Of a stretch of DNA of 64,000 bases, positions 1 to 8,293 are shown one piece after another. Every line of letters begins with the position of its first letter. Position 1 is the first letter of the stretch. The DNA is taken from NCBI GenBank assembly GCA_907165135.1, contig OU015567.1, positions 9,176,001 through 9,240,000 of the forward strand, read 5' to 3'. The translations under genes were made by a program, and so were the position numbers. The notes beneath the pieces are model-generated. The model ran no database searches. It worked only from the letters and a program-made list of their open reading frames with translations, and was not told the origin of the DNA. This stretch comes from Oikopleura dioica (Eukaryota; Animalia; Chordata).

Positions 1-13
1 GCAGGGTTCTAAA

Positions 14-280
14 TCGACTAGTCGAGTTTCGACTAAAGTCGAAGTCGAGTCGAGTCTTAGTCGAAAAGACTAGCTCGACTCGACTTGGTTGATTGTGAGA
101 GAAAGTCGACTCGACTCGACTAGAAAATCATAAATATGTCGACTTAATTTCGACTAGTCGAATAAGTCGAAAAAGAAGTTAAAGATGTAGTCGAAAAAGT
201 CGAAAATCAAGTCGAAAAAGTCGAAAATTGAGTCGAAAAAGTCGAAAATTTAGTCGAATAAGTCGATTTGAAAAGTCGAA
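14..280. repeat. Left subterminal array of TCGA-core pentamers (GTCGA/CTCGA/GTCGAAAA)
   Basis: Dozens of gtcga/ctcga units directly inside the left TIR. Confidence 0.9.
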
Positions 281-393
281 AACATTCGGCAGTGAACTCA
301 AATCTTTTCTAGATTTTGTAAACTGACTTTTCTAGACTTCAGAAATGAGCCTCGCGCCAGCATCATTTTCTCGCCGCTTTAGTCGAAGGCAAC

Positions 394-3300
394 ATGTCGA
401 AGGACACTTCGAGGCCAAAAAAGAGGAAAATAGACCATGATTTTTCGCTTGATGAAATCTCCGAAATGCCGGAACTTTCTCAGGAATCGACCAATCAGAG
501 TCAAGAGATCCAGCAGTCTGCGAGTCAGCAAGTTACGGCGGAAATTTTCGATTTGACCCTCGCAGAAGAAAATGTAGTCGACGAGGCTGCATTAAATGAC
601 CACACATGGGAGAAAATAGAGTCGACTACAATTATCAATTGGCTTAAGAGACAGGATAAAGAAGTTTACGATCTACCAGAAGCTTTTTTCGCCAAACTCG
701 ACAAAAACGGAATTTTTACCGGAACAGTAAAATGCAACCGTGAGAATTGTCCAACATTTGTGAGCCGCGAGACTAAAAACAAGAAGAATATAAATGTGAA
801 AACATCTCACTGTAAGCTTTCTACGATGAAGTAATCATAATTCTTTTTAGTTTTGCAGCATCTCAAAGCAGCTCATAAAATCGAAAAAGAAAAAGATTTG
901 CCTGCTGCTTTTTCACGATTTCGCGCAAGAAAAACACCGACGATTTCCGAAAAAAATAAACAGGAAATACTTGAAATCGAATGCTCTATCTTAAGCGAGT
1001 GCAAGCTTCCAATGAGTTTCTTCCAAAGGCACTGTTTTCAAATTACTTTATTGATGATAACCATGATGCTTTTAGAGAAGCGATCAAAAAACGGGACAAA
1101 GCGATGATGAGATCAGTTGGAATTAACGAGGAAGTGATCGACCAATATATGAGTTCAAGTCCTCATATGATGAAAGAACAAATGAAAAAAAATAATGAAG
1201 AAATGAAGAAGATATTCGTAGAGATTGGTCCTTTTCTCGTTGAAGATGGAACAATGCATCTCGAAATCGATCACAAGAGCATTAAAAAGGGCACACAAGA
1301 CGAAGAGAAACACGGATTTGGAATCGTCGCGATTCTGAATTATGAAGAGATTCATGAACGATACATGATGAGTTTCAAAGCAACAGACTATACCGACACT
1401 GCAACGAACGTCATTTTATTAGAACAATGTTTGAAGGTAAGATTATTATCAAAATTACTCGAAAAACAATGAATCAAGGAATATGGGCTAATCGACGCCT
1501 GGAAAGAGAAAAGAATAATCATCAGTGGCGACTCAAAGATGGTAGGAACCATGGAAGCCCATGCGTGTCTCTGGACGATATGCCTCTCACACACTTTGGG
1601 ATGCGCCGTTGATGGGATACGAGCAAAATCGCCCATTTTCGGAGTCGAAAAGAGCAAGTTTGAAGGTCCTGATAACTTTGTCAAGGAGGCGCGAAAATCA
1701 AGAAAAATACCTCATTCTGCTCCTAAAGGTGAGTTTTCCAAAGATCAAAACAATCTTTTTTTGTCAGAAAATTTTTGCCAAAGACCAAAACAAACCATAC
1801 TTTAGTCAAAAATTATCATAAGATGCAATTGCCAAAGATCATAACAATCAAAATAGTCCAAATAAATATTTTTAGACTCGCCCAAATCGATTTCAAAATA
1901 CTTGCAGAACCAATCAATTACAGAAGTTGCCCAGTTGGACAATTTTTTTCTGTCGTTTCCTGAACAATATCAAGATTACGATCCAGAAGATGAAAAATAT
2001 CTAGCGGCACTTGAAGCAGCCAAAAATCAATTCAAAAGCTTCCCTAAAATCAAGGTAAGATATAACAAGCTTAATAAAAAAGATAATTTTATCTTTAAGG
2101 AATCGTATTTCTCCATTCGCTTTGGATCAATGTTCTCGAAATATAAACATATTCTCGAGAACTCGCGCTCCCTCAACGGCTTGAAATTGAATTTGGACCC
2201 GAAATACAGCTATCTCTTGGCGAATATCGATCTGCCTGACATGTCCTTTATGAAATCAGTATTTTTCTTTCTGAATAAGGCGCACACTCTCCTTCTGGCT
2301 TCAGAACAAAGAGATTCATCGGTAGGCTTCTTTTGCGCAATTCTTTTTAAAAAATCTTAGGTTCTCGAAGTCATAATCAGTATGGAAAATTTGGTCATCG
2401 ACGCCTGCCGAGTGAGATCAACCCTTCATTTCGAGCAAGAATACGTATTGGACCAAGCGGAGAAAATCGGGAAAGCGGTTGTGGCGAAAATTATATCTAT
2501 GTGCTTCGGAAGTGTTTGGCTCCCAAGTCATAATGATAAAATTTCTGGCATTGTCAACTCTCCCTCCGGAGAACCTCAACGATTCGTAGAAGTTCACATG
2601 GTTGCCGCACTATTACACTGGCCATACCGCCAACTCAAACTCCATCGCATGATTCGGGCGCTAAAAGAAATGGATGATGACTGTTTTTTCAAGACGAATC
2701 GAATTTTGATCGAAACAAAATTGAAAGAATGGCCAGAAATCGCCAAAAAGAAACTTCGATTTCTCTCTGAAAAAATTGAAAAAAATTCCTCGATCACTCA
2801 GATGATGACTGGCGACAAGTCCCAAAAAGGTCAAAGTGCGGACATCTACGACGACGATGACAAAACAGTGCCAGTTAAAGGAAAAATTCCATTATCCAAG
2901 CTTGACAGTGAGCTGCAGATCTATTTCAACTTGTCCACCGACCAATACGCCGAATGGAGAAACGCAAAAGTTGCTCCAGAACATAACCCCGAGTCGTTTT
3001 TCTTCAGAACATTCTGGGAAGACCACAAAATCCAAATGCCGACTTTATCGAAAATTGCTGGAAAGGTAAATTTTATAAATTTTCAAAATTTAAATAAAAA
3101 TTAGATCGGCCGCTTGCCATCATCCTCAAACGAAGCTGAGCGAGAGTTCAGTTGCTTGTCGTACCAAATGGGAACAATTTTTCATAATCAAAAAGCAGCC
3201 CATATAGAAAAGAAACAACAAACAGCGGAACATGGTCGCTTCAAAGAGGCCTTGAAAAAAATCGCTGCGCGAAAAGGACTCAAAACTCAAGCCTTTGGAA

Positions 3301-3432
3301 CATCTGAAGCATCAAAAAAAATAGTAAGAATTTTCTGAAGATATCATATTTCTTATTTTTTAGAAAATCACTCCGCTTACCCAGCCTTTCGTCATAAATT
3401 GTGGAAAGAAGAACGTCATAAAAATAGTTTGA
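394..3432 (+). CDS. Spliced hAT transposase (BED zinc finger, DDE core, C-terminal hATC dimerisation domain)
   Basis: Predicted introns 812-850, 1029-1075 (GC-AG), 1437-1478, 1729-1875, 2055-2099, 2322-2360, 3066-3104 and 3324-3363 join the ORF pieces in frame. Motifs: CNRENC...TSHFLQHLKAAH (BED), LEIDHKS (D1), ISGDSKM (D2), CLSH (CxxH), IRFGS (TRW-like), FWEDHKIQMPTLSKIAGKIGRLPSSSNEAEREFS (hATC, catalytic E). The last intron is less certain; unspliced, the stop is at 3338. Confidence 0.88.
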
Positions 3433-3469
3433 TAAATATATCCTTACTATTTAGTAATAAATTTTTTTG

Positions 3470-3665
3470 ATCTCGACTTTTCGACTTTTTATTCGACTTT
3501 CGACTTTTTCGACTTTTTCGACTTCGTTTCGACTTTTCGACTAATTAGTCGAATTAGTCGACTCGACTCGACTCGACTCGACTTAGGAGTTTCACAAAGT
3601 CTTTCGACTCGACTCGACTCGACTAGGGATTTTTTGAGTGACTAGCGACTCGACTCGACTCGACT
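3470..3665. repeat. Right subterminal array of TCGA-core pentamers (CTCGA)n / TTCGAC
   Basis: Runs such as tcgactcgactcgactcgac and tttcgac directly inside the right TIR, mirroring the left array. Confidence 0.9.
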
Positions 3666-3695
3666 TTTGATTTTGGGCTCAGATTTAGAACCCTG

Positions 3696-5404
3696 CCCGC
3701 AAGGGAATGACTCCGCCCAGGTCACTTTTTTAAATTATGGAAAATAAATACTACAGATCCTCCCCTGAATTGTCTGGTAGTCAGTTGGTAGTTTTTGTAG
3801 CCCAAGAATAACTATTCATTTTTTTATAAAGTGACCCATTCCAGACAAGCATATCTATCAGTTTGATTCTCAGCAAGTTCAACAGAGACGGAAACAATGG
3901 AGTTGTCAATAAATGCTCCTGAAAACTCCGCGGTCTGGAAAACTTGATCCGTGTGCACAAGAGCTACTGTGTCATCTTCGTCAAGCCAGTTGGCAGAGTT
4001 GCCCATGAGTCGCTATTTCCAGGGGTCGAGAAGGTTTTCTTTTTGAATTTGATTATTTCGTGTTTTTTTTCTTTGTTCGACCCCGCACACGTCACTTTCA
4101 GGATCTCATTGTAGCCCGGAAGGGGACATGTTATCGTGGCGGTTCCATTGCGTGTCCAAGGTTGATCTTATCTCTGTTGCACATTTTGATTTGATCAAAT
4201 TTTTGGAAGGAGCTTGATTTTCAACCTTTTCTTTGAGCGGCGTCGTAAAGACCTCGGGCTCGTTTTCTTTTGCAACACGGAGTTCTAGGAGATTTTGTCG
4301 GACTAGGCAAAAACACAGTTGTCTCGAGAGTGGGATTAGGAAGTACCTGGTCGACGGGCGCTCTATCCCAGAATTACAAAATTTAATTTGAACTTTCAAA
4401 AAAAGTAATTGACCCTCTATTCAAAAATTAATTATGAATTAAAATTATTTTCTTAAAATTAAAACTCTTATTTGGTATTTTTACTTCGTTTTTCCGATTT
4501 TAAGCAATTTTATGTTGGTTCGAAAATTTTCTTTTTACTAAATAATTTTAGTGAAAATATTCTATTACTGGCTGTCTATCAGTCATTTGAAATCCTCTTC
4601 CTTGTGGTGAACTTCGCAAAAGTAGTAGCCTTCGTCTTTTGGCGAAATTTGGGTGAGTTGAAAATCCTAAAAGAGAACCTTTGGTCCATTAGAAAGATAA
4701 ACCGTGCTCGTTGCTGTTATCGAAATGGAACAAAATCCGCGATTAGAAGATTTTGTTGTAACCAGCAACAAACTTAAAACGTAGAGCAGCGCTGGAATCT
4801 AAAAACTGGAGCCTTCTCGATTTTGGTTAAACGTAAATGCAATCTTATGATGTGTTTGCTATTGCCAGAGCTGGCAGATTATATTATTGTGATTGAGTCT
4901 ATTTTAATAAGGGTCAAACAAGGCGATTAGAAAGAATTTGCTGCGGTCAAAAAAAGGTGCAATAAATCGGTGATTTGAATATTAAAAAGAGGTTTGCTGG
5001 AACAATTTGCATACGAGATTGGGGAAGGGAGTCACTAGCGGTTTTATCTTTCTTATGAAAATAGTTTTATGCAAAAGGCTTTACGGTACCTGAAAGTTGG
5101 AGCGACTGACTTGAAGTCGATTTTGATACTCGCCGTTTACAGAAATTGAGACTCCCCAAATTTGAACGAGTTGTGTCCAACCAGATAAATCCTCCAAATT
5201 CTTTTTGAAATAGATAATTGCATATGGACTTGCGGCTAAATGATCAGGATTCCGGATTATTTCTGTTTTCAAATTGGTACCTGAGCGTTTGCATTGAATA
5301 ATAGCGGAGTCCCCTTTTCTTCTAAAAAGTCTCTTTTCAACCCTCAACGAAGTATCAGCACCAGATAAAGATATAAAACTAACAACGAAAAGAAAAATGT
5401 TCAT
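3696..5404 (-). CDS. Secreted or membrane immunoglobulin-superfamily protein (V-set plus further Ig domains); 3' part cut by the hAT element
   Basis: Signal peptide MNIFLFVVSFISLSGA. Ig B-strand AIIQC, EYQNRLQV, and an exon at about 4590-4666 reading DFQLTQISPKDEGYYFCEV (DxGxYxC). A second domain reads NGTATITCPLPG...QTDRYACL. Reading continues up to the TIR with no TM segment or stop. Confidence 0.7.
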
Positions 5405-5804
5405 TTTCTTTATCAAATTTTGGAGATTCCTGAAAAACTACATGAAGATTTTTGTTTGGCAATCGAGTTTTGTCAACAAAGGATCTGACAGCCATAAGAT
5501 TATCGGCTCATGCGAGGTGTACTCGCCGATGTCAACACCTAAACCACGGTAGTTCCTCTATGATCAAAAGTTAGCATCCATGAGTCATGAATTTTTTAAC
5601 ACAAATTTAATTAATAAGTTAACTTGCATCATCAGACATAACCAACCGTGTGCAATTTTGATATCAAGAGAAATGATCAAGCTCGAGCAGAATAGCTCGC
5701 GCGCGCCATCGGAGGTATCCGGAAAAATAAAGAGAGCTATTGGAAATCGCGGGGAAAAGTACGTCAAAGCGTGAACTCGCTCTCTAGATCAGCCAAAAAC
5801 CAAA

Positions 5805-8293
5805 ATGAAAATTTGGTGGGCATTTTCCGCACTTGCCATCGCTACAGAGAATGTTCAAGAAGATGAAGCAGGTAAGAGAACAAGAGATAAAAAGAGAAAC
5901 CTTTGTCCCTAATTATAGAAAATCTAATCACGGCTCTTAGATTCAAGAAAAGGAGCTCCAGATCGGGGAATGTATAATCATGACAGATTGGATGCAATGA
6001 CTTCCAGCATTTTCATGAGCGGAGGAAAAAAGAAACGAGGAGGAAAGTGTAAAAACGGAGGCTGCAAGGGAGGCAAGGGTAAGCAAACCGCTGCTAACAG
6101 TCACAGAACACCAGCTGCTCCAAAGCCTACCAAGCCAAATACGACACGATCTCCTGCTAAGAAGCCGCCAAAGAGAGGTGGTAAATGCAAGAACGGAGCC
6201 TGCAAAGGAGGAAAAGGGAAGAAAACAACCCCAGCTCCAATGAAAACTACAACCACCACAAGAACCACCACCACGACAACAACTACCACTAGAAAAACAC
6301 AACCGCCAAAGAAAGAAGCGCCAAGAGAACAGTTGAAAGGCAGCGGACATAGCAACAATCAACAAGCAGCCTACAATTACGTCGGCACTGCTGGCCAAAC
6401 CCAAGATGTCGTCGACGGTGGTGTACCACAGTTTTTCCTCCCTGGTTCCTTGACACCCGCTGATGTAACGAAGTGGGGCTCCGGTTGTTCCCTTCACTGT
6501 CTCCATGGATTTTCCGGACGATGCCAGCTTTGTGGATCTGCTGCTTGCCGCGTTGCTCCACACGAGTTCGAATGCCGTCAATATAAGCACTGCACTTTGA
6601 ACGTCAACAACGTTTGCAAACCTGGTGAAGATTGCGACGCTGTCCGCACCATGTGGTGGCAGACTTGCTGGACTAGTCCCTGCACTAGCCGATGCTGGTA
6701 CAAAGGATCTGTCGGTAACCAGGAGGCTTGTGATGAGTGCTGCGATCTTGCCTGCAGAGAAGATGACAAATACATTGGAAACAGTTGCTTCAGATGTGCT
6801 CTTTGCAAGGACAAGTGGGGACCCCATACTTGGGGAAAAGTCAGTCCCGAGGTCAAATACAATGGCCACGTTTGCTGGGGCCGAGATAGTAAGTCACCTT
6901 TTCGTTTTGAATTTTAACTAAATCTTACTAAGAAACGAGAGGAGCAATCATGCAAAAACTCAAGTACGATCTGCCAGAAGATGCAAGCAAGGTCATTGCG
7001 GGCACTTTAGAACAATCAGGTTCCTTTGCCAACTCCAAGCCAAATGGTTACAAGCCCGGCCAGTCATCCAATAACAAGGGTGACGTTGGAATCTTCACAT
7101 CGGGCGTTGGCTCATTCGAGTTGACCAAAACACCACCAAAGAAGCTTGTGCAGGATAAGAACAAAGATTGCCAGAGGATTTGCCGTGACGCGAAGCGATC
7201 CACCACCCGCGGCGAGCCAGCTCATGTCCAGGCGAAAGAATGGAACCAGTGCAAAGGTAATAAAACATCAATTTAATATGTAAAACATGATTTTACATCA
7301 CAGAGTGCTACTGCTGGGAGAATCCACAAATGGAAATGTGCGAAGCCATCGATTGCCACGTCGCTTGTTTATCCTCCAACATGTCAGGCGAGGGCTGTCT
7401 GACTTGCACAAGATGCAAAACATGTCCAGCGGTGGCGAACAAAGACAAGAACGACAACTTTGTGAACGCAGTCCAGAGCATTTTCTCGCGAGATCAGGCC
7501 GGTACAGCGCCGATTGAAGAGAACAACGGGCCACTTTTGCTCGGTGAAAGATCGACTAACAATGAGAATCGAGAATCGCTAGAAAGAACTGTCAACAGGT
7601 ACTATTCTTTGTTGATTGTATAAAACTATTTTTTTTCTAGTCAATTTGGATACATTCATGCTGCGTCGCGAGAAGCTACTCTGGCCATCCAGGAGCTCGG
7701 AATCCTCAACGTCTTCAAGCCAAAATGTCTCGCTTGCAACAGAATGGACGACCGACAATCCTGCCGAGAATCTTGCGCTGCCTACAAACGAAACCCACAG
7801 AACCATATTGCCGCGCACAACTGCAAGCAAGGCAATTGTGCAGTAATCCTTGCCAGTGCCTGCAAACAGTGCATCAGAAATTGTGACAACATCAAGTCCG
7901 TTTCGCTGTCTGCAGCTGGAAACTCAAACCCTGATATTGCCGACACCTCATTTGAGAACTGCTACCATACTTTTGGATGCGCAAGTGACTGTAAAGCTGC
8001 TCTCAAAAAGGTAATTTAGCAAGATAAGATCCTTGATTTACCATTTTTAATAGGTCAAGGGCGATTTGGAAAGCCGAAGTGGCGGAGAACTGACGTCTAT
8101 CGATGACCTGTCCCCTGAAGAAGCGATCCAATGGGCTCTCCAGCTACCCTTTGAAAGCAAAAAAGAAGCCAAGGAGAAGGGATTCTTCGTCGACGGAACT
8201 CTTGACTACTCAAACGATCAGCTTGAAGCTAAGACGAACCGAGGATTCTCTTTGATCGAAATGAAGAAAAATGGCTGGTGGTGGCGAGAGTAA
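5805..8293 (+). CDS. Orphan secreted Cys-rich protein with Lys/Gly repeats and a Thr-rich mucin segment (candidate extracellular/house protein)
   Basis: Signal peptide MKIWWAFSALAIA. GT-AG introns (e.g. 5872-5940, 6889-6931) link the ORFs 5970-6917, 6950-7276, 7330-7623, 7744-8019 and 8066-8293. KRGGKCKNGxCKGGKGK occurs twice, followed by poly-Thr and dozens of CxxxC/CxxC motifs; the protein ends WWWRE. Confidence 0.75.

Follow-up and report, generated by a model that had tools for sequence, protein, structure and literature searches.

The transposases of hobo and Hermes, both of the hAT superfamily, are encoded without introns, that of Ac is interrupted by four, and that of Tol2 from medaka by fewer than the gene described here. 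The host in the present case, Oikopleura dioica, has one of the smallest animal genomes, which is poor in transposons; its introns turn over very fast, and its spliceosome is unusually tolerant. In Drosophila, the Tip-family element BuT2 has five exons, 12-bp terminal inverted repeats (TIRs), 8-bp target site duplications (TSDs) and derivatives resembling MITEs (miniature inverted-repeat transposable elements) (PMC3942097). Here we describe a 3,694-bp element at positions 2-3695 of a 64,000-nucleotide stretch of O. dioica chr2 (contig OU015567.1; hereafter the window), corresponding to chr2:9,176,002-9,179,695 of the Okinawan assembly OKI2018_I69. We consider it very probably the single full-length copy of a hAT DNA transposon of the autonomous type, which has seven conserved introns and chooses its targets in an Ac-like manner.

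Like Ac, hobo and Hermes, the element combines an 8-bp TSD with nTnnnnAn bias, a short TIR starting with CAG and inverted subterminal repeats with a predicted protein carrying a putative N-terminal BED-like finger, candidate D-D-E residues, CxxH, and a putative C-terminal hATC domain with a SER-type catalytic Glu. Unlike them, it has DHK for DxW, IRF for RW (whose Trp is W319 in Hermes) and a Cx4C instead of a Cx2C finger, and it is too divergent for exon-by-exon detection with Pfam or PDB profiles. With BuT2 and Tol2 it shares a hAT transposase that is made only after splicing, but it has eight or nine exons, its introns are of a size typical of the host (39-47 nt), and their positions recur in families of only 25-35% identity within one host genome. 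Paralogs within O. dioica (CAG5101471.1 and a 4,192-bp element, see below) resemble it in their colinear protein, introns 2, 3, 5 and 7, CAGGG TIRs and hATC domain, and differ in identity (25-35%), subterminal repeats and TIR interior. The Drosophila P element, which belongs to another superfamily and whose transposase is controlled by splicing, provides a functional analogy only: an unremoved intron would here give a truncated DNA-binding protein, not a transposase. A literature search covering part of the relevant work found no description of an Oikopleura hAT element. As a transposon, the present one is otherwise ordinary. An initial annotation of the window, made from its sequence, had proposed more introns than in well-studied hAT transposases, and this is supported by seven confirmed introns, compared with the five exons of BuT2 (PMC3942097).

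The TIRs, CAGGGTTCTAAATC and GATTTAGAACCCTG, are complementary at 14 of 14 positions, as the initial annotation had stated, and the element is flanked on both sides by the TSD CCCGCAAG (Table 1). The seven bases predicted to precede the window are present before its first base and complete the left duplication (L001 1494-1501). Pairing of the ends can be extended to 15 nt (1-15 with 3682-3696), the extra position being a chance pairing of the first and last base of the TSD. The TIR start CAGGG fits the hAT short-TIR rule (C/T)A(G/A)NG. Copies of GTCGA number 27 within the first 330 bp and 22 within the last 260 bp, compared with 12 within the 3,104-bp interior; their orientation is mostly forward in the 5′ array and reversed in the 3′ array.

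A search of the OKI2018_I69 assembly (64,281,565 bases, 19 contigs) identified one full-length copy, the present element, and 14 or more shorter ones, 286-1,846 bp in length, that have 8-bp TSDs of their own. These include a 1,088-bp derivative, 93-95% identical to the element, in which an internal deletion joins position ~395 to ~3049, and copies of 1,689 and 1,846 bp that keep the element's ends around an unrelated interior of ~1 kb; the 5′ end of the 1,689-bp copy is 97% identical to that of the element. Small non-coding copies (MITEs, 286-535 bp) are numerous and about 75-83% identical to the element, whose 5′ 20-mer has 12 exact occurrences in the genome. The element is the likely parent of this MITE family. 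Among 15 family copies with an 8-bp TSD at no more than one mismatch, 10 of them perfect, T was found at position 2 in 9, A at position 7 in 11, and TA at positions 4-5 in only 2. The target consensus of the Ac family, according to Arensburger et al. in 2011, is reportedly nTnnnnAn. The Buster consensus is nnnTAnnn (PMC3517528). The target preference of the present family is of the Ac type, not of the Buster type. For possible recent mobility, which the initial annotation had considered probable, the evidence consists only of the perfect TIRs and TSD, and set beside it are a single full-length copy and nearest derivatives of 93-97% identity; exact-protein look-ups with a flanking open reading frame (ORF) and the exon-7 ORF, seeking empty or filled insertion sites in other samples, returned no record.

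Two further TIR variants recur genome-wide, CAGGGCTCTAAATAGACTAG (n = 10) and CAGGGTTCGAAATCGCCTAG (n = 7), and probably mark sister MITE families with a common outer TIR. A 508-bp MITE of a related family lies at L014 795-1302 (contig C1:5796357-5796864), with the TIR CAGGGATGTAAATC and the perfect 8-bp TSD GCCCAAAT.

The exon model was read from a three-frame translation map of the window. Exons 1-8 total 2,532 nt, or 844 codons, and the gene comprises about 844-866 codons for eight or nine exons. Intron sizes are typical of the host, in which a 64.3-Mbp assembly (OKI2018_I69, 19 scaffolds) has a median intron length of 49 bp and 11% non-GT/AG introns (PMC8008620). Removal of intron 6 is obligatory, since it ends in an in-frame TAG.

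The model is supported by a sibling element of ~3.56 kb, found on the marine metagenome contigs L034 and L038, which has nearly the same TIR but GCCTAG subterminal repeats. Each of exons 1-8 matches the sibling at 39-68% amino-acid identity, exons 3-7 from first to last residue and with a change of reading frame from exon to exon, and the sibling carries introns at the same seven positions and phases as introns 1-7; the intron sequences themselves are unalignable between the two, intron 4 excepted. A third lineage (L045) confirmed introns 1-3. Over 336 ungapped codons, the proportion of synonymous differences between window and sibling (pS) is 0.83, which is saturated, compared with a nonsynonymous proportion (pN) of 0.24, and the spliced frame has therefore been under purifying selection. 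In contig L044 (JGI 3300032519, Ga0314676_10097685), exons 4-5-6 and 7-8 are joined with introns 4, 5 and 7 exactly missing. This contig represents a related, internally deleted sibling copy that has lost ~105 codons at the start of exon 7, with a change of frame, and it runs on into the 3′ repeats of the element. It is cDNA-like and best read as spliced RNA, which suggests that defective copies get transcribed and spliced. A metagenome scan with the exon-3 alignment gave no match, and one with the sibling's exon 3 gave a single unspliced contig. Of the roughly eight mini-introns initially annotated, seven are confirmed by comparison with relatives, but the eighth is unsupported because the ORF of L044 terminates where exon 8 does and putative exon 9 is unmatched in relatives. 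No counterpart of intron 8 was found in relatives, and the frame stays open without its removal.

Sibling copies occur in differing flanks across many samples. For L034 and L038 the TSDs on the two sides differ, and these flanks, probably chimeric repeat assemblies, were set aside. The sibling and the window share the outer 13 bp of the TIR; comparison of their subterminal regions (L034 160-490 and 3390-3717 vs window 16-330 and 3436-3681) revealed different repeats, GCCTAG and GTCGA, respectively. Exon 1, which bears the finger, is the least conserved exon, with 39-45% identity to the sibling lineages. This repeat divergence, together with the weak conservation of exon 1, is consistent with the DNA-binding domain and its binding sites having co-evolved.

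We searched 1.84 billion representative proteins with an exon-7 profile (A1) constructed from window exon 7 and its genomic paralogs. Only 29 proteins matched, the best of which were exon-sized ORFs from marine metagenome and Logan contigs; the relatives include the O. dioica proteins OKI2018_I69.chr2.g6308 and OKI2018_I69.YSR.g17121. The lineage is thus divergent and narrowly distributed, in agreement with the initial proposal of a distinct lineage.

Several of these relatives carry the Dimer_Tnp_hAT domain above the cut-off of 21.4 bits (P0021, 34 bits; P0025, 39 bits; P0018, 23 bits). P0021 (CAG5101471.1, that is, OKI2018_I69.YSR.g17121; 764 aa) has PDB matches to Hermes transposase chains only, the hATC region included, and the Atlas clusters nearest to it in features and in structure (TM 0.5-0.55) are all of hAT, ZBED1 or Hermes type. 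Profiles of the window exons align colinearly on P0021 (exon 3 at residues 176-262, exon 4 at 285-342, exon 6 at 403-452 and exon 7 at 501-693); exon 8 matches P0017, P0018 and P0008 in their hATC half. PF05699 (hATC) gave no match on exon 7 or exon 8 separately, the domain being split by intron 7. On the combined evidence of the 8-bp TSDs, CAGGG termini, hATC-bearing relatives and Hermes match, we consider hAT membership secure.

The candidate D-D-E residues are invariant and colinear with those of P0021, whose Atlas model provided the only view of the fold. The first Asp lies in EIDHK, with DHK invariant in four subfamily members; P0021 has DDK at this place, weakly aligned (HMMER, 0.3 bits) to Hermes SATID. 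The second Asp lies in GDSK, and the CxxH that had been annotated as retained is CLSH, corresponding to CLLH and CYAH in relatives. For the catalytic Glu, AEREFS in exon 8 is aligned with IEREFS of P0021 and SERTFS of Hermes (E572, chain numbering). A Glu in exon 6, within the invariant ASEQRD, was also considered and was rejected in favour of the exon-8 residue by the Hermes alignment. The conserved Trp of RW is absent; IRF is invariant in five subfamily members, and P0021 has IRW at the aligned place. IRF is an aromatic replacement rather than a loss. DHK and IRF, both correctly reported in the initial annotation in place of DxW and TRW, are old, selected states of the subfamily and not lesions. 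In the annotated BED finger, the four putative zinc ligands (Cys, Cys, His, His, split by intron 1) are invariant in four lineages; the spacing is Cx4C, and no window ORF matches Pfam zf-BED.

Table 1. Features of the hAT element in the window, listed by position.
Feature	Position	Strand	Remarks
Last base of left 8-bp TSD CCCGCAAG	1..1	.	other 7 bases immediately upstream of window
5′ TIR CAGGGTTCTAAATC	2..15	+	14/14 complementary to 3′ TIR
5′ subterminal region with dense GTCGA repeats, putative transposase-binding sites	16..330	+	
Exon 1: start codon, KKRK basic patch, first half of BED-like finger (Cys 733-735, 748-750)	394..811	+	
Intron 1, 39 nt, GT-AG, phase 1, interrupts zinc finger	812..850	+	same position and phase in L038, L045
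Exon 2: finger His-x4-His (859-861, 874-876), then LPMSFFQ motif	851..1028	+	
Intron 2, 47 nt, GC-AG (GCACTG...TTTTAG), phase 2	1029..1075	+	GT-AG at same codon and phase in relatives
Exon 3: candidate first catalytic Asp (1269-1271) within DHK (1269-1277)	1076..1436	+	
Intron 3, 42 nt, GT-AG, phase 0	1437..1478	+	position common to paralogs
Exon 4: candidate second catalytic Asp (1530-1532, SGDSK); CxxH as CLSH (1581-1592)	1479..1728	+	
Intron 4, 147 nt, GT-AG, phase 1, subfamily-specific	1729..1875	+	precisely removed in L044
Exon 5	1876..2054	+	joined to exons 4 and 6 in L044
Intron 5, 45 nt, GT-AG, phase 0	2055..2099	+	same position in paralogs
Exon 6: IRF motif (2115-2123), counterpart of hAT (T)RW	2100..2321	+	
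Intron 6, 39 nt, GT-AG, phase 0, in-frame TAG at its end	2322..2360	+	
Exon 7, 235 aa: helical region and first half of hATC (FWEDHK...LSKIAGK)	2361..3065	+	
Intron 7, 39 nt, GT-AG, phase 0, splits hATC	3066..3104	+	absent from L044/P0017; position common to paralogs
Exon 8: second half of hATC; candidate catalytic Glu (3138-3140) in AEREFS	3105..3323	+	
Putative intron 8, 40 nt, GT-AG, unsupported	3324..3363	+	if retained, ORF stop is TGA 3336-3338
Putative exon 9, 22 codons and stop, unsupported	3364..3432	+	no match in relatives
3′ subterminal region with inverted GTCGA (TCGAC) repeats	3436..3681	+	
3′ TIR GATTTAGAACCCTG	3682..3695	+	perfect reverse complement of 5′ TIR
Right 8-bp TSD CCCGCAAG	3696..3703	.	

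From these features we propose that the spliced mRNA would be translated into a four-part transposase. The BED-like finger presumably reads the GTCGA repeats, and is followed by an RNase-H-type D-D-E core (Asp in DHK, Asp in GDSK and Glu in AEREFS), a predicted helical insertion domain with IRF instead of RW, and a C-terminal hATC domain. Through the hAT hairpin mechanism, such a transposase would cut out this element, its internal-deletion derivatives and its MITEs and insert them anew, and insertion would duplicate 8 bp with nTnnnnAn bias.

The introns of the element differ in age. The gene of P0021 has seven introns, of which those near residues 146, 270, 396 and 697 are the counterparts of window introns 2, 3, 5 and 7; it is without introns 1 and 4 and has two introns of its own. 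Introns 2, 3, 5 and 7 are common to paralogs of about 25-35% identity. The paralogs L022 (chr1) and L029 (chr2) read through the site of intron 4, which is missing from three paralog lineages. On this distribution, introns 2, 3, 5 and 7 are older than the split of hAT families in this host, with intron 4 gained later in the subfamily, and the lineage has thus carried its introns for long. A second hAT element was found at L065 2216-6407 (chr2:6,939,715-6,943,906). It is 4,192 bp long, is bounded by 12-bp TIRs CAGGGTGGGGAA and a TSD ATATAGAC, both perfect, and encodes a paralog that is 27-32% identical in exons 6-7. As this paralog lies within TIRs and a TSD, at least some of the paralogs are likewise transposons.

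Intron 4, with three times the length usual for an intron, contains three copies of a TGCCAAAGAYCAAAACAA-like 18-nt motif (1736-1753, 1776-1793 and 1830-1847). The motif is conserved in the sibling, in which the remaining intron sequence has diverged and synonymous sites are saturated. Genome-wide, it has 60 matches compared with 14 for a reversed control, clusters on chr1, chr2, XSR and PAR, and occurs in a 41-bp tandem array on contig C4:5467714-5467854 (L046 1214-1355). Rfam assigned no family on the element (best sn668, E 0.14), and folding of intron 4 gave no signal (z-score -0.03). We put forward only tentatively, as a rather unlikely scenario, that intron 4 is a datable intron gain in a transposon and itself carries a working element, the motif of which could bind a host factor controlling where or when transposase mRNA is produced or spliced.

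Several observations weigh against the reading as an autonomous-type hAT transposon. No Pfam hAT model is matched by the window ORFs or by the exons scanned singly, an outcome foreseen in the initial annotation, which expected ORF-based family scans to miss the transposase. PDB searches with the exon profiles A2, A3 and A4 did not reach Hermes, so that the protein is assigned to the superfamily by transitive evidence. The genome-wide search found no near-identical copies beside the single full-length one. Finally, the donor of intron 2 is GCACTG here and GT in three other lineages, and a cryptic GT at 1034-1035 (GTTTTC) lies 5 nt downstream, the use of which would lead to a TAG and a protein of ~200 residues.

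Intron 2 nevertheless exists as a position, as annotated. With splice boundaries marked by slashes, it reads caa AG/GCACTG...TTTTAG/A gaa in the window, caa CG/GTAAGA...TTACAG/G gaa in the sibling (L034/L038), CG/GTAAAT...GAAG/T in L045 and aa/GTTTGT...TCTAG/a in the paralog L029. A frameshift mutation in place of an intron, suggested by L029 being open across the site, was rejected: a 42-nt GT-AG intron, itself in frame, occupies this site in L029, and L034, L038 and L045 have canonical introns that agree in codon and phase. The GC donor is a derived state unique to this copy and far from consensus. The coding region is full-length and, over ~2.5 kb, without any further lesion, but the description of the copy as intact is conditional on a non-consensus GC donor with a competing GT: production of full-length protein from this copy depends on use of the intron 2 GC donor.

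The first alternative accepts a hAT transposon and proposes that this copy has recently been disabled, the T-to-C change in the donor, with +4 to +6 also changed, blocking productive splicing. Either the 47-nt intron would be retained, shifting the frame, or the GT at 1034-1035 would be used, leading to the TAG; both outcomes would yield a finger-only protein of ~200 residues, which could act as a repressor. Consistent with this, the GC donor is found only here, the cryptic donor GTTTTC resembles the GTTTTT donor of sibling intron 3, and no young copies accompany the single full-length one. However, with the rest of the coding sequence free of lesions, inactivation would have to be very recent, and the 11% of non-GT/AG introns in the host annotation (PMC8008620) indicates that a GC donor may be tolerated. 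We regard such recent inactivation as distinctly possible, if short of probable.

Domestication, by which the locus would be an immobile host gene derived from a hAT transposase, would account for the single copy, the long-term purifying selection and the many conserved, host-gene-like introns. We consider it highly improbable in view of the perfect TIRs, intact TSD and subterminal repeat arrays, the deleted and MITE derivatives that share these ends and have TSDs of their own, and the occurrence of sibling copies in differing flanks in many samples. Another superfamily with 8-bp duplications, such as P, is hardly credible despite the lack of a Pfam hAT match in the window exons, given relatives with hATC above the cut-off and PDB matches to Hermes only, a domain order and motifs colinear with a hAT protein, a TIR starting with CAGGG, and no THAP-type match found.

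Minus-strand ORFs flanking the element (L001 977-1141, and window 3824-4006 and 5081-5416) resemble immunoglobulin-domain exons (e.g. DEGEYWC). Because they lie on both sides, the hAT element may sit antisense in an intron of a host gene. Further along, at window 5943-6917, two long ORFs overlap, one of 308 aa on the minus strand and one of 315 aa on the plus strand; the latter shows stretches rich in Thr and in Cys, as in secreted or mucin-type proteins.

Taken as a hAT transposon, the element provides a concrete candidate for the transposase source of one hAT MITE family of O. dioica. Its gene records intron history within a mobile element, with four old positions and one later gain, and intron gain and splice-site erosion can thereby be tested outside host genes.

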